Part shown: positions 9,019-13,409 of the stretch, in pieces
Layout: the number at the start of each line of letters is the position of its first letter
Position numbering within the stretch: the stretch's first letter is position 1
DNA from: Octopus sinensis
Lineage: Eukaryota
Length of the DNA stretch: 64,000 nt
Direction: 5' to 3'
NCBI RefSeq assembly: GCF_006345805.1
Contig: NW_021837028.1
Location: forward strand, 17,724-81,723
Position numbers and translations under genes: made by a program
The notes under the pieces: generated by a model
What the model was told of the DNA's origin: nothing
The model's database searches: none
Seen by the model: the letters and a program-made list of their open reading frames with translations, nothing else

Positions 9019-9209
9019 GTTTAGCTTTGTTGGAATATGAGGCTGCTAAAGTGGATATAAAAATAGCTATGAAAAAAACATTCAGTTACAGTTCCGCACC
9101 GCAAGTTGCTGAAGATATTATGGCATATATCAACAGTAATCCTATTGTGTCTAAGAGCAAGGTTTTTATCATCTTTGCGTCACCACACGAAGTCTACCGA
9201 CTGCTAAAG
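9019..9209 (+). CDS. Class C GPCR, VFT exon
   Basis: ttttgcag| acceptor and |gtaaca donor, phase 1 to 0. Encodes (G)LALLEYEAAKVDIKIAMKK...SKSKVFIIFASPHEVYRLLK. Confidence 0.9.
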
Positions 9210-9800
9210 GTAACATAAAAAAAAATTATTCTCATAATTTATTCTCTCCGAATCCCTTTTTTTAAAAAAAATAGCTAATTATTTTCCTTTCGTTTGTCAT
9301 TTTCTTATCGTTATTCTTTGAATCTTATTTGTTTGGTTTCAATTGTGCCTTGCCTGAAGATAATGAGTTTATATGATTCGACCAGCTATCAATTTTAAAA
9401 TTATGAAAACTATCAAGAGAAGTATAAAACAAGTTTATCATAGTGGGAATTTTTCGACAATATATTCAAATAAAATTGGAATCGATCTGGCGTTTAAAGC
9501 CAACTGGAAAAAACAATGAACAGAATGCCGTTAAATGTTTGCCCGCCATGTTAACCATTCAGCTAGCTCGACTCTTTAGACGCCCGAACATATTAAAATG
9601 TATGTGTTTCATTTTTCTCTTTAAGGTTAAACTACTTCCTAGTACGATACTATTTCTGTTTGTCTTAAATTGTGGCATAAATACTCTTTGGTGAAAAAGT
9701 TTGCTTGAAATTTCCATTTTCTCTAAAGTGTACAGATAATGCATTTGTTTAAATAAAAACCGATAACGATTTTGTTTTTTTTTGCTTTTCTTCCGCGTAG

Positions 9801-10467
9801 ATATTTCAGAAATTCAATTTTTCGGACATCACATATTTCGCATCAGAAAGTTGGACATTAAATAAAAGAATTTTGGATCTTGATGTCAGTATTATTGAAG
9901 GCACTCTGGGGTTGCGTCCTTATTCCGAAACTCCAACCGATTATCAATCATATTTGGAAAGCCTGTCTTTAAAGGACGTCACAGAGTTAGATACTTGGTT
10001 TCAAGAATATCTCATTATTAAGCACATTTGTTCCAATATTACTCTACAAAACGAAACGAACTGGATACATGATGAGATACCTCAAATAGGTCACCGCCAT
10101 TTTCAAGAAGCATGCTTTCGTCATTTGCAGTCGAGTGGAAAATCAAGGGAATTGTTCGATTACCTAATGTTGAAGAAAGTACCATTCGTATTGGACGCAG
10201 TATATGTTATTGCGCATGCATTACATAAATTACTGTGCAATAACGGTTCCTGTCTGAAGAGGTTTATTTCAAACAAAGAAATATTTGAAATGATAAAACA
10301 AACAAAATTTGACGGTCAGTCCGGCTTTATTGAGTTTAACGAATTTGGAGATATTTCTGGAGAATTCTCCTTGTTCAATATACAGAAGAAAAAAGACGGC
10401 CAGTTGTTCTACAGAAAAGTTGGGCATTGGAATTGTTCACATTTAGTTATGGACAGGAACGATATCG
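9801..10467 (+). CDS. Class C GPCR, VFT exon
   Basis: ttccgcgtag| acceptor and |gtaaga donor, phase 0 to 1. Encodes IFQKFNFSDITYFASESW...GTLGL...KVPFVLDAVYVIAHALH...FDGQSGFIEFNEFGD...YRKVGHW...DI. Confidence 0.93.
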
Positions 10468-10825
10468 GTAAGAAATTTCGTAAAATATAAATACAGTTCT
10501 AAATTTGTGTTCTCTCTCTCATGCACGCATACATACACACACAGACACACCTACTTATATATATTATATATATATAATAATAATATATATATATAATTAT
10601 ATATATATAATATATATATATATATACCCTTATAAGACGCAAAAAGTTGCCAACAAGCGGCTACGGGAGTCGAAACAGTGCCCTCCTGTAGTCACTTGCT
10701 GGTAACCTTTTTACGTCTTATCAGGAAGAAAAATATTGTCTTTCACTGTTGTTCTTACAACCTTACTGCGTTCGAAATATACTTTCGTGTCTGTAAAATA
10801 CCAATCACAATCGACGCTTCCAAGT

Positions 10826-11480
10826 TTGTGTGTGTATATATATATATATATATATATATATATATTATAATATATATATATAAATATATATTATATATAT
10901 ATATAAATATATATATATATATATATATATAAATATATATATATATATATATTATATATAAATATATAATATATATATATATATATATATATATATATAT
11001 ATATATAAATATATATATATATATATAAATATATATATATATATATATATATATATAAATATATATATATATATAAATATATATATATATATATATATAT
11101 AAATATATATATATATATATATATATATAAATATATATATATATTAAATATATATATATATATATATATATAACTATATATATATATATATATTAAATAT
11201 ATATATATTATATAATATATATATAAAATATTATATATATATATATATAAATATATATATATATATATATTGAATATATATATATATAAATATATATATA
11301 CATATATAAATATATATATATATATATATACATATATATATATATAAATATATATATATATATATACATATATATATATATATATATAATATATATATAT
11401 ATATATATATTATATATAAATATATATATATATATATATATATATATATATATATATATTATATATCATATACATATATA
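10826..11480. repeat. Long (TA)n microsatellite
   Basis: About 650 bp of nearly pure TA. Confidence 0.97.
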
Positions 11481-11482
11481 TA

Positions 11483-11708
11483 CAGGGTTGGTCAAATCTT
11501 ACTTGACAGTAAATCAAACTATTTAATTCCAAGATTAAAACAAAAAATATTTTATATGAGACTTCGCTAATAAATAGACACGTTGAAAAAAACGGCCATT
11601 TTAACACACACCATTCAATTATCAAACATTCATAATTGGAATGAATAAATAAAATTGAATATTTTATGGAATTTTGATTTACTGTCGGGTGACTTTTGGC
11701 CAACGTTA
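11483..11708. mobile_element. Tc1/mariner-type MITE
   Basis: Imperfect TIRs gttggtcaaa...gacagtaaatcaa / ttgatttactgtc...tttggccaac in a TA context. Confidence 0.55.
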
Positions 11709-12454
11709 TATTTATATATACAAATATGTGTGTTTGTGTATACAGAGGCCACTCACTCTAAGTTACTGTCGTGCTGATGATACTAAACGGTAGGTGACAT
11801 TTGGAGTGATTTTTGTTCGTGAAATTATCTCATCTTCTCATGGGGAACTAACTGTTCACAATTACCGTTTGATGGTTATCTCCATATTATCTCCATGTCG
11901 AGAGATATGGAGATAATTAAAATAAACCAAAAATTCATGTTCATATACATGCTACAAGTAATTCTGAGTATTATTTCTCTTAGCTCATGTGTTATATATA
12001 TATATTTACATAATATAAAATGATAAAAATTGTTAAAAATTTTATTACTGACCAGCATATAAAAAAGACATATTAAGGTAAAAGTATAAATAAGGACATA
12101 GAAAATAATTTTCTTTGCCCATATGCTGAAAAGAGACGCTAAATCGTCCAATCACGTTAAATATCTTCACTATTATTATTACACGCGTGTGGAAACGAGG
12201 AAGCAAGCCAAAAGGAATTCAAAAAATTGAGTTATCTTTGGATGGGACCAATTTCTGGATTAACCTAAAAGGTTTCTCCTTCACCACCAGAGAACACCAG
12301 GAAATAAATAAAATACTTATACATACCAACAGAAAAGATAATTAAGGTGGCTCAACAATTTAGCATCTGTTTTCAGCGTAGAGGCAAAGAAAATTCTTTT
12401 CCTATGCCCCTATCTATAATTGTATATATATATATATATATTTATATACATATA

Positions 12455-12875
12455 CCGCCAACTTTGCCCAAACGACCTGAACATGAGCTTCAAGGTTCAT
12501 CCAAGACTGGGACCACGGGCCATACGTCCCCTGCCCAATTCAAGATCACAGCATACATGTACACTACAACATAATTTCTTTTCCTCAACAGGCTCTGCCC
12601 TATTTAACATTGTCCCGAAAGAGATCAAAGAGGAACAGGATCCCATCAACTTTAAACGGAGTCTGGACAGATTCCTTCAAGGAATACCAGATAAGCCACC
12701 CATAATTGGATACAACTCACTCAACAAAAACTCACCACTTGAATGGACCATAAACAAAACTTGACTTAAACAGGATTCAAATAATCCTATCAAGTGGTGC
12801 TATTAAGTTAGACATGGCCTGGACCAATCATTGGTCGAAACATATCTAAGTTTATCTAAGTTTATCTAAGTTTAT
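12455..12875 (+). mobile_element. 5'-truncated CR1/L2-type LINE (ORF2 C-terminus and 3' tail)
   Basis: FSSTGSALFNIVPKEIK...FKRSLDRFLQGIPDKP, followed by a (tctaagttta)n tail. Confidence 0.75.
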
Positions 12876-13292
12876 ATATATATATATATATATATTGTTT
12901 AATAAACACAGTATTTATTTTTATGAGCTACTAAGTGTTTCATGCGACGAAAACGACTCCATTTTATAACACGTCTGATGCCTTCATGTAATCTTAAGTC
13001 TGTGGTCACGTGGTATGTTTCAAACTAAAACAGGACGATAGAATAAGAGAAAATATGAGAAACCTATAGTTTAAGGTTATTTCTTTGAAAACGCTGTCAT
13101 TTTTGATGGCACGGGTAAGCTAGTATATATATTTATACATGTGTGCGTATGAGTTTACCGTATCCACCGACACACACACACACGTGTGTGTGTGTGTGTG
13201 TGTGTGTGTGCATGTATATGAATACATGTGTTTGTGTGTGTAAATGTACATGTATAATATCCATTAATTTAAGGATTTTCTTCGTTTTGTAG

Positions 13293-13409
13293 TATGGAAA
13301 GGTGAAGCTGATGTAGTGATATCTCGTTGTGACCAGCCCTGCGCACCTGGGACACATTTAGCTTTAGCATCGGACAAGGAATGCTGGACATGCGTCCACT
13401 GTGGTAAAG
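13293..13409 (+). CDS. Class C GPCR, cysteine-rich domain exon
   Basis: gttttgtag| acceptor and |gtactg donor, 117 nt, phase 1 to 1. Encodes (V)WKGEADVVISRCDQPCAPGTHLALASDKECWTCVHCGK(G). Not in the ORF track. Confidence 0.92.

Follow-up and report, generated by a model that had tools for sequence, protein, structure and literature searches.

The 64,000-nucleotide stretch of Octopus sinensis DNA analyzed here (NCBI RefSeq assembly GCF_006345805.1, contig NW_021837028.1, positions 17,724 to 81,723; hereafter the window, whose first letter is position 1) carries on its forward strand the final five exons of a single gene for a GPCR (G protein-coupled receptor) of class C. Our analysis revealed that the encoded receptor no longer has either cysteine of the disulfide bond that ties the Venus flytrap (VFT) domain to the cysteine-rich domain (CRD), with Lys256 and Glu557 standing in their place, and that this paired loss is real and rare among class C receptors. 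We consider it fairly probable that the product is a working amino-acid-type sensor whose flytrap would still drive the seven-transmembrane (7TM) domain via the CRD, across a lobe-2/CRD junction that is no longer covalent.

Paired loss of the interdomain cysteines

The original prediction had placed the motif KVDIKIAM in the VFT lobe-2 exon (9019-9209) and KECWTC in the first CRD exon (13293-13409), and both were found there, with three alignments agreeing on their assignment. The translation of the lobe-2 exon begins with LALLEYEAAKVDIKIAMKK and contains EYEAAKVDIKIAMKK, and that of the CRD exon reads WKGEADVVISRCDQPCAPGTHLALASDKECWTCVHCGK, ending in ASDKECWTCVHCGK. When the protein was compared by HMMER with solved chains of CaSR, 'akvdikiam' fell on 'eerdicidf', placing Lys256 in the C236 column, and 'ke..cwtc' fell on 'ptcCFEC', with one cysteine facing the CC pair. 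A MAFFT alignment with 43 relatives also showed Lys256 in the VFT cysteine column and a single cysteine at CC. A further MAFFT alignment, made with the closest relatives, contained no indel from PG to CW, so that E557 stands directly below the first C of CC. When the CRD was parsed by profile column, the pattern was C-C-E-C-C-C-C-C-C, confirming the predicted count of eight of nine cysteines, and the eight that remain are in register and correspond to those which, in solved receptors, make up the four internal disulfides.

The two missing residues had been proposed to be bonded partners, reportedly numbered C240 and C527 in mGluR3. Characterized receptors bear this out: the C236-C561 disulfide of CaSR fixes the orientation of lobe 2 (LB2) relative to the cysteine-rich region (CR) (PMC4977154), and the Cys234-Cys518 disulfide of mGlu2 ties the ligand pocket physically to the CRD (PMC12394075). 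Our literature search returned nothing specific on a natural loss of the VFT-CRD bond or on cephalopod class C receptors.

The rarity of the paired loss, which goes beyond chance, was evident when the two columns were scored across class C relatives, as had been suggested with the original prediction. With a profile built from canonical relatives, we read both columns in each domain copy found across 403 class C proteins; this sample comprised CaSR, mGlu1-8, T1R, V2R, and OlfC types, along with sequences from cnidarians, insects, nematodes, lancelets, and lophotrochozoans. Both columns were covered in 351 domain instances, 348 of which carried Cys/Cys; a loss of only one partner was never observed, and the remaining three instances carried Lys/Glu. 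These three are O. sinensis isoforms X1 and X2 and the Octopus bimaculoides orthologue, that is, one gene, and thus represent a single evolutionary event rather than statistical co-variation. Moreover, once one cysteine has gone, its partner is left as a free thiol, and loss of that partner as well is then chemically expected.

An intact gene maintained by selection

The five exons have AG/GT borders and compatible phases and correspond to residues 205-902 of O. sinensis XP_029657989.2, annotated as "extracellular calcium-sensing receptor-like isoform X1," with the first ~204 residues being coded upstream of the window. The spliced 902-amino-acid product, made by joining the window-encoded part to the N-terminal portion of the top database match, is identical to XP_029657989.2 throughout. 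The intact frame, the splice sites, and the 7TM motifs KTDR and NFNEA, all of which the original prediction had called, were thus present as described, the two motifs reading FKTDRIL (K698, 16421-16423) and ENFNEAR (N802, 16733-16735).

The O. bimaculoides orthologue has the identical Lys/Glu residues at both positions, and its locus (L001; CM046604.1) contains all eight exons without indels and with all splice sites kept; its counterpart of exon 9019-9209 is 98% identical. The exons of the two octopuses are about 96.5% identical, compared with 87.7% in the one intron compared, and the dN/dS ratio over the 697 window codons was 0.22 (dN 0.021, dS 0.093), with regional values of 0.14 for the VFT, 0.43 for the CRD, and 0.29 for the 7TM domain plus tail. 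The difference in rate between the CRD and the rest of the gene was not significant (5 non-synonymous/3 synonymous versus 28.5/36.5 substitutions; Fisher p = 0.46). These comparisons indicate that the present state of the gene is maintained under purifying selection. The view that the changes were selected co-variation and not decay can therefore be kept in its second part, given the dN/dS of 0.22 and the CRD-side loss in cuttlefish described below, whereas co-variation was an overstatement for a single event. Pseudogenization or decay was rejected on the basis of the same ratio, the intact splice sites, and the open frame. Alternative or mutually exclusive cysteine-bearing exons were also rejected, since no second copy of either exon was found in the window when octopus, chiton, nemertean, and cnidarian proteins were used as queries.

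In the O. bimaculoides gene model (P0002, named "metabotropic glutamate receptor 2"), the first coding exon (L001 8523-8735) is missing and the last exon (L001 22889-23898) is joined to a Mos1-transposase helix-turn-helix (HTH) fragment. The genome of this species nevertheless codes for a complete orthologous open reading frame (ORF) running to a normal stop.

Age and polarity of the loss

In a phmmer search of 1.84 billion representatives, full-length identity did not exceed about 33% among the best 150 matches listed. Short last-exon fragments were retrieved from cuttlefish (Acanthosepion pharaonis "CASR" and Logan contigs) and from the chiton Liolophura (XP_064597568.1), cuttlefish being represented among the best 150 matches listed by such fragments only. 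Word-index searches returned no cephalopod beyond the two octopuses, but the same searches missed proteins of the query alignment. Over the last (7TM) exon, identity to octopus was 42% for cuttlefish, about 37-38% for the chiton, 33% for the nemertean Tubulanus, and about 30% for others, an order of similarity that mirrors the species tree.

The cuttlefish sequence compared (L002; A. pharaonis CAHIKZ030000238.1) spans a CRD exon (146-259) and an intact last exon (9626-10645). The former lies 9.4 kb upstream of the latter and has AG/GT borders and the same phases as in octopus. It reads VWKGGKLLTSRCSDDCRPGYRKLFGSDNDCWTCVRCEKG, with the segment GSDNDCWTCVRCEKG carrying the motif NDCWTC, in which Asp occupies the first C of CC. 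All eight other CRD cysteines are retained in cuttlefish. The position is thus acidic in both lineages, Glu in octopus and Asp in cuttlefish. In the annotation, the cuttlefish orthologue appears as a 214-amino-acid "CASR" fragment of the last exon, and its CRD exon is unannotated.

The Asp of cuttlefish indicates that the CRD-side cysteine was already gone in the common ancestor of octopus and cuttlefish, and our comparison therefore points to an old loss on this side, predating a split that published estimates place a few hundred million years ago. The chiton (P0209) and nemertean (P0046) proteins, the nearest non-cephalopod relatives, keep both VFT-CRD cysteines and the inter-subunit loop cysteines. 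The chiton protein shares with those of cephalopods the CRD-end motif FG.GW..N and a PK[LVI][RK] motif in transmembrane helix 7 (TM7).

Other cysteine changes and retained features

The loop that carries the inter-subunit disulfide (AFDFLSRPG...SVIAVVG; residues ~117-160, coded upstream of the window and at L001 11297-11593 in O. bimaculoides) is without cysteine in both octopus species, whereas the chiton, the nemertean, and a further relative (P0050) have one to three cysteines in it. In our class C sample, this cysteine was also missing in 28 non-octopus instances, including the T1R-type proteins P0039, P0247, and P0258, so that its loss is much commoner than that of the VFT-CRD pair.

A cysteine has been gained at residue 517 (GHWNC), where the last VFT hairpin ends and a few residues ahead of the VFT-CRD linker; the chiton, nemertean, and P0050 proteins have Gly here (WNG), and O. 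bimaculoides keeps the cysteine. The octopus ectodomain thus holds 15 cysteines, an odd number, which leaves one free or intermolecular. Another gained, octopus-specific cysteine, Cys836 in extracellular loop 3 (NHGTCSS, 16835-16837), is Arg or Lys in the chiton and cuttlefish and is also kept in O. bimaculoides. Two annotated isoforms affect the CRD: in RefSeq isoform X2, use of the internal acceptor at 16075-16076 removes 16 residues including two CRD cysteines, and in isoform X3, exon 13293-13409 is skipped as a whole, removing 39 residues and five cysteines, both by annotation only. The gained Cys517, the missing inter-subunit loop cysteine, and these CRD-deleting isoforms were not part of the original prediction.

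The equivalents of the L-amino-acid-site residues S147, S170, Y218, and E297 of CaSR are all kept in an alignment to 5fbh_B, and the conserved Asp and Tyr of the amino-acid site are present in exon 2256-2365; the equivalents of CaSR W70 and T145 are Ala. In CaSR, S147 and S170 anchor the bound amino acid by its backbone, and mutation of Y218 or E297 abolishes the response (PMC4977154). Pfam searches returned PF00003 (7tm_3) with 132.1 bits against a cut-off of 33.5, the match spanning positions 1-251 of 251, PF01094 (ANF_receptor) with 76.8 bits from the window-encoded part alone, and PF07562 (NCD3G) with 38.1 bits, slightly below its cut-off of 38.9. The cysteine pair linking transmembrane helix 3 and extracellular loop 2 (C677 and C767) is invariant in the alignment of relatives. 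The TM7 motif PKxY reads PKLR here (16901-16912), and the form PK[LVI][RK] is common to the relatives from cuttlefish, chiton, nemertean, and sea anemone (P0225) and to P0050, so that it is a feature of the clade and not of the cysteine loss.

Family placement

By its VFT-CRD-7TM architecture, predicted from sequence and from a structural model, the octopus protein is a class C GPCR, although two hallmarks of the class are lacking: one is the ninth cysteine of the CRD together with its partner in the VFT, the other the inter-subunit cysteine. The O. bimaculoides protein, modelled with AF2, had a mean pLDDT of 72; values were 80-93 over the bulk of the VFT and 7TM domains and about 70-85 across the CRD, and they were lower for the N-terminal portion and for two long loops. 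The top Foldseek matches of this model were full-length CaSR, mGlu2, and mGlu3 chains.

CaSR (7dd5, 5k5s) was both the best full-length sequence match in the PDB (E = 4e-59) and among the best Foldseek matches. It shares the architecture, the amino-acid-site residues, and the KTxR and NFNEA motifs with the octopus protein, but identity is about 26%, and the octopus protein is without C236 and C561 of the interdomain bond and C129 and C131 of the two inter-subunit bonds and has PKLR in TM7. The mGlu2/3/5 receptors likewise share the architecture and the CRD cysteine register, and the CWxC motif of the octopus protein has Trp as in mGluRs; the O. bimaculoides orthologue is annotated as "mGluR2." In contrast to them, the octopus protein has no C234-C518-type bond and no single inter-subunit cysteine. 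Residues R78 and K409 of mGluR1, which contact the glutamate side chain, align with Ala and Lys, respectively.

The rankings did not converge on one family. In the PDB, mGlu3 followed CaSR by six orders of E-value, whereas the clade profile placed mGlu5 above CaSR, mGlu5 proteins being its next-best matches after a sea-anemone protein. The N-terminal half matched the VFT chains of T1R3, CaSR, and mGlu5 with E = 1e-40 to 1e-33, T1R3 chains being best, and identity to CaSR, mGlu, and T1R3 chains was 25-28%. As the best match changes with the region and profile used, neither CaSR nor mGluR orthology is demonstrable, and the RefSeq name "CaSR-like" was assigned automatically and says nothing on orthology.

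The nearest full-length relatives are the proteins of the chiton Liolophura and the nemertean Tubulanus (XP_074659487.1), which share with the octopus protein the TM7 form PK[LVI]R and a stretch in intracellular loop 2 (HxDRRR / LEKRKRDR). They differ from it in keeping the VFT cysteine, CC, and the loop cysteines and in having Gly at the position of Cys517. The octopus protein belongs among a few orphan receptors of lophotrochozoans that are named "CaSR-like." Among more distant class C receptors, the sampled T1Rs resemble it in missing the inter-subunit loop cysteine but keep the VFT-CRD cysteine pair. The GABA-B receptor passes on flytrap closure without a CRD or a staple of this kind (PMC5719802), whereas the octopus protein has a full CRD.

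Proposed coupling without an interdomain disulfide

The lineage has lost the disulfide between VFT lobe 2 and the CRD as a pair, Cys being replaced by Lys256 on the flytrap side and by Glu557 (Asp in cuttlefish) on the CRD side. Under the mechanism that we propose, the CRD would stay rigid, its four internal disulfides being kept. Ligand-driven movement of the flytrap would be passed through the CRD to the 7TM domain, and the lobe-2/CRD junction would be held by the peptide linker and by an interface of which a Lys256-Glu557 ion pair is probably a part. The strong constraint on the flytrap and its binding residues argues that the relay is still in use, as does the internal disulfide scaffold of the CRD, kept since before the octopus-cuttlefish split. 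Since Lys256 and Glu557 replace a bonded pair, they would necessarily lie close to each other if the domain packing is retained. Their opposite charges and the acidic residue on the CRD side in both lineages lend weak support to a salt bridge as a substitute for the staple. The more far-reaching proposal, that this is a coleoid receptor with neither a covalent flytrap-stalk link nor an inter-subunit link, kept in this form since before octopus and cuttlefish diverged, with a Lys-Glu/Asp ion pair replacing the staple, is put forward only tentatively.

Several observations weigh against retained coupling. Rondard et al. are said to have found in 2006 that removal of the bond in mGlu2 abolishes agonist-driven activation, so that retained coupling in the octopus receptor would require some compensation. 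The annotated isoforms X2 and X3 delete parts of the CRD, and the dN/dS of the CRD is the highest of the three regions, although it derives from 8 substitutions only. In addition, the 7TM-exon identity of only 42% between octopus and cuttlefish points to a fast-evolving lineage.

Such observations could instead reflect a mechanism that has truly changed, in which the flytrap would no longer be the canonical driver and the protein would act as a non-covalent or heterodimeric partner, as a constitutive receptor, or as one gated through its 7TM domain or CRD. The lost staple, the inter-subunit loop cysteine missing as in the T1R-type proteins, the best match of the N-terminal VFT half to T1R3 chains, the isoforms dropping part of the CRD or its whole first exon, the PKLR motif in place of PKxY, and the fast divergence from the cuttlefish orthologue would all fit this explanation. 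The inter-subunit disulfides of CaSR and mGluRs tune basal activity (PMC11045811), and cross-linking of two CRDs results in constitutive activity (PMC5582870; PMC5719802); by analogy, gains and losses of ectodomain cysteines could plausibly shift the set-point of a receptor. However, the VFT is the most constrained region of the gene (dN/dS 0.14), with its ligand-anchoring residues conserved, and the retention of eight CRD cysteines since the octopus-cuttlefish split is hard to explain with a stalk that does not transmit. The PKLR-type TM7 is, moreover, shared with chiton, nemertean, and sea-anemone relatives that keep both cysteines, and a partner gene was not identified, none having been sought, with only this one class C gene lying in the window. 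On this balance, a changed mechanism seems rather unlikely to us, although it deserves more weight than the two explanations that follow.

A covalent link could also be supplied by another cysteine, with Cys517 either bonding to a CRD cysteine after rewiring or forming a new inter-subunit disulfide. Cys517 replaces a Gly conserved in the chiton, nemertean, and P0050 proteins, is kept in O. bimaculoides, and lies just before the VFT-CRD linker, and the odd count of ectodomain cysteines requires one that is unpaired or intermolecular. We nevertheless regard such a link as improbable, since the eight CRD cysteines are just those that pair internally in solved receptors, leaving no free partner in the CRD, and rewiring would break a conserved internal pair. 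Least credible is an artefact or decay, whether through pseudogenization, faulty assembly, or wrong exon calling, the canonical cysteine-bearing exon then being located elsewhere. The subthreshold NCD3G score and the visibly mis-annotated gene models of O. bimaculoides and cuttlefish would be in line with it, but the identical residues in two independently assembled octopus genomes, the CRD-side loss in cuttlefish, the constrained open frame with all its splice sites, the failure to find second exon copies in the window, and the exact agreement with RefSeq isoform X1 largely refute it, and we assign it hardly any probability. A coupled receptor with a non-covalent lobe-2/CRD junction is thus the reading that we prefer.

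Gene features and surrounding sequence

The positions of the exons, of the residues and codons discussed above, and of the alternative acceptor are listed in Table 1.

TABLE 1 Features of the class C receptor gene in the window
Feature	Position	Strand	Basis
VFT exon, residues ~205-241 (FRLVPSDW...NYGRLG)	2256..2365	+	tblastn against the window, AG/GT borders, phase
VFT lobe-2 exon with the lost-cysteine position	9019..9209	+	Translation, splice sites
Lys256, codon AAA, column of CaSR C236 / mGlu2 C234	9060..9062	+	Alignments, profile columns
Large VFT exon (residues 306-527) with ASESW, which holds the counterpart of CaSR E297	9801..10467	+	Sequence comparison
Cys517, codon TGT, in GHWNC; extra VFT cysteine	10434..10436	+	Alignment with closest relatives
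First CRD exon, residues 528-566, cysteines 540, 544, 558, 561, and 564	13293..13409	+	Translation, splice sites
Glu557, codon GAA, at first C of CC (CaSR C561 / mGlu2 C518)	13379..13381	+	Alignments, profile columns
Last exon: remaining CRD (C578, C581, C598), 7TM domain, C-tail	16029..17038	+	Pfam 7tm_3, 132 bits
Internal AG, alternative acceptor of annotated isoform X2; drops GQFTNAYNMASCLNCT, including C578 and C581	16075..16076	+	RefSeq annotation
Stop codon	17036-17038	+	End of last exon

The window as a whole consists of animal DNA that is rich in AT and in repeats. Frame-shifted reverse-transcriptase ORFs (RVT_1, zf-RVT) of a retroelement of the non-long terminal repeat (non-LTR) type (3-2024) lie within the intron preceding exon 2256-2365. 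Degenerate fragments of mariner/Mos1-type transposases (HTH_48; Transposase_1/DDE_3) were found at 8005-8684 and 22963-23618, one in the intron before exon 9019-9209 and one downstream of the gene. A 3.4-kb imperfect (TCA)n microsatellite (52671-56031) consists of about 1,121 copies with an 85% match and a GC skew near -1, and it is open in several frames because of its composition alone. Tracts resembling (TA)n and (TATATG)n, with a GC content of 0.19-0.23, occupy 10500-12000, 26000-28000, and many introns, making up much of the intronic and intergenic sequence.

Implications for class C receptors

Accounts of the class C activation relay take the disulfide between lobe 2 and the CRD to be one of its invariable elements. 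A receptor that has long been without the CRD-side cysteine while under purifying selection would therefore serve as a natural mutant for testing the need for this covalent bond, and it would also bear on replacement by an ion pair, on coupling efficiency, and on basal activity. If the octopus protein is indeed an unstapled, ion-paired receptor, the staple would not be mechanistically obligatory, and coupling, dimer dynamics, or basal activity may differ from those of all characterized class C receptors. Collectively, our findings mark an uncharacterized, fast-evolving clade of cephalopod orphan receptors that is at present mislabelled as "CaSR-like" or "mGluR2."

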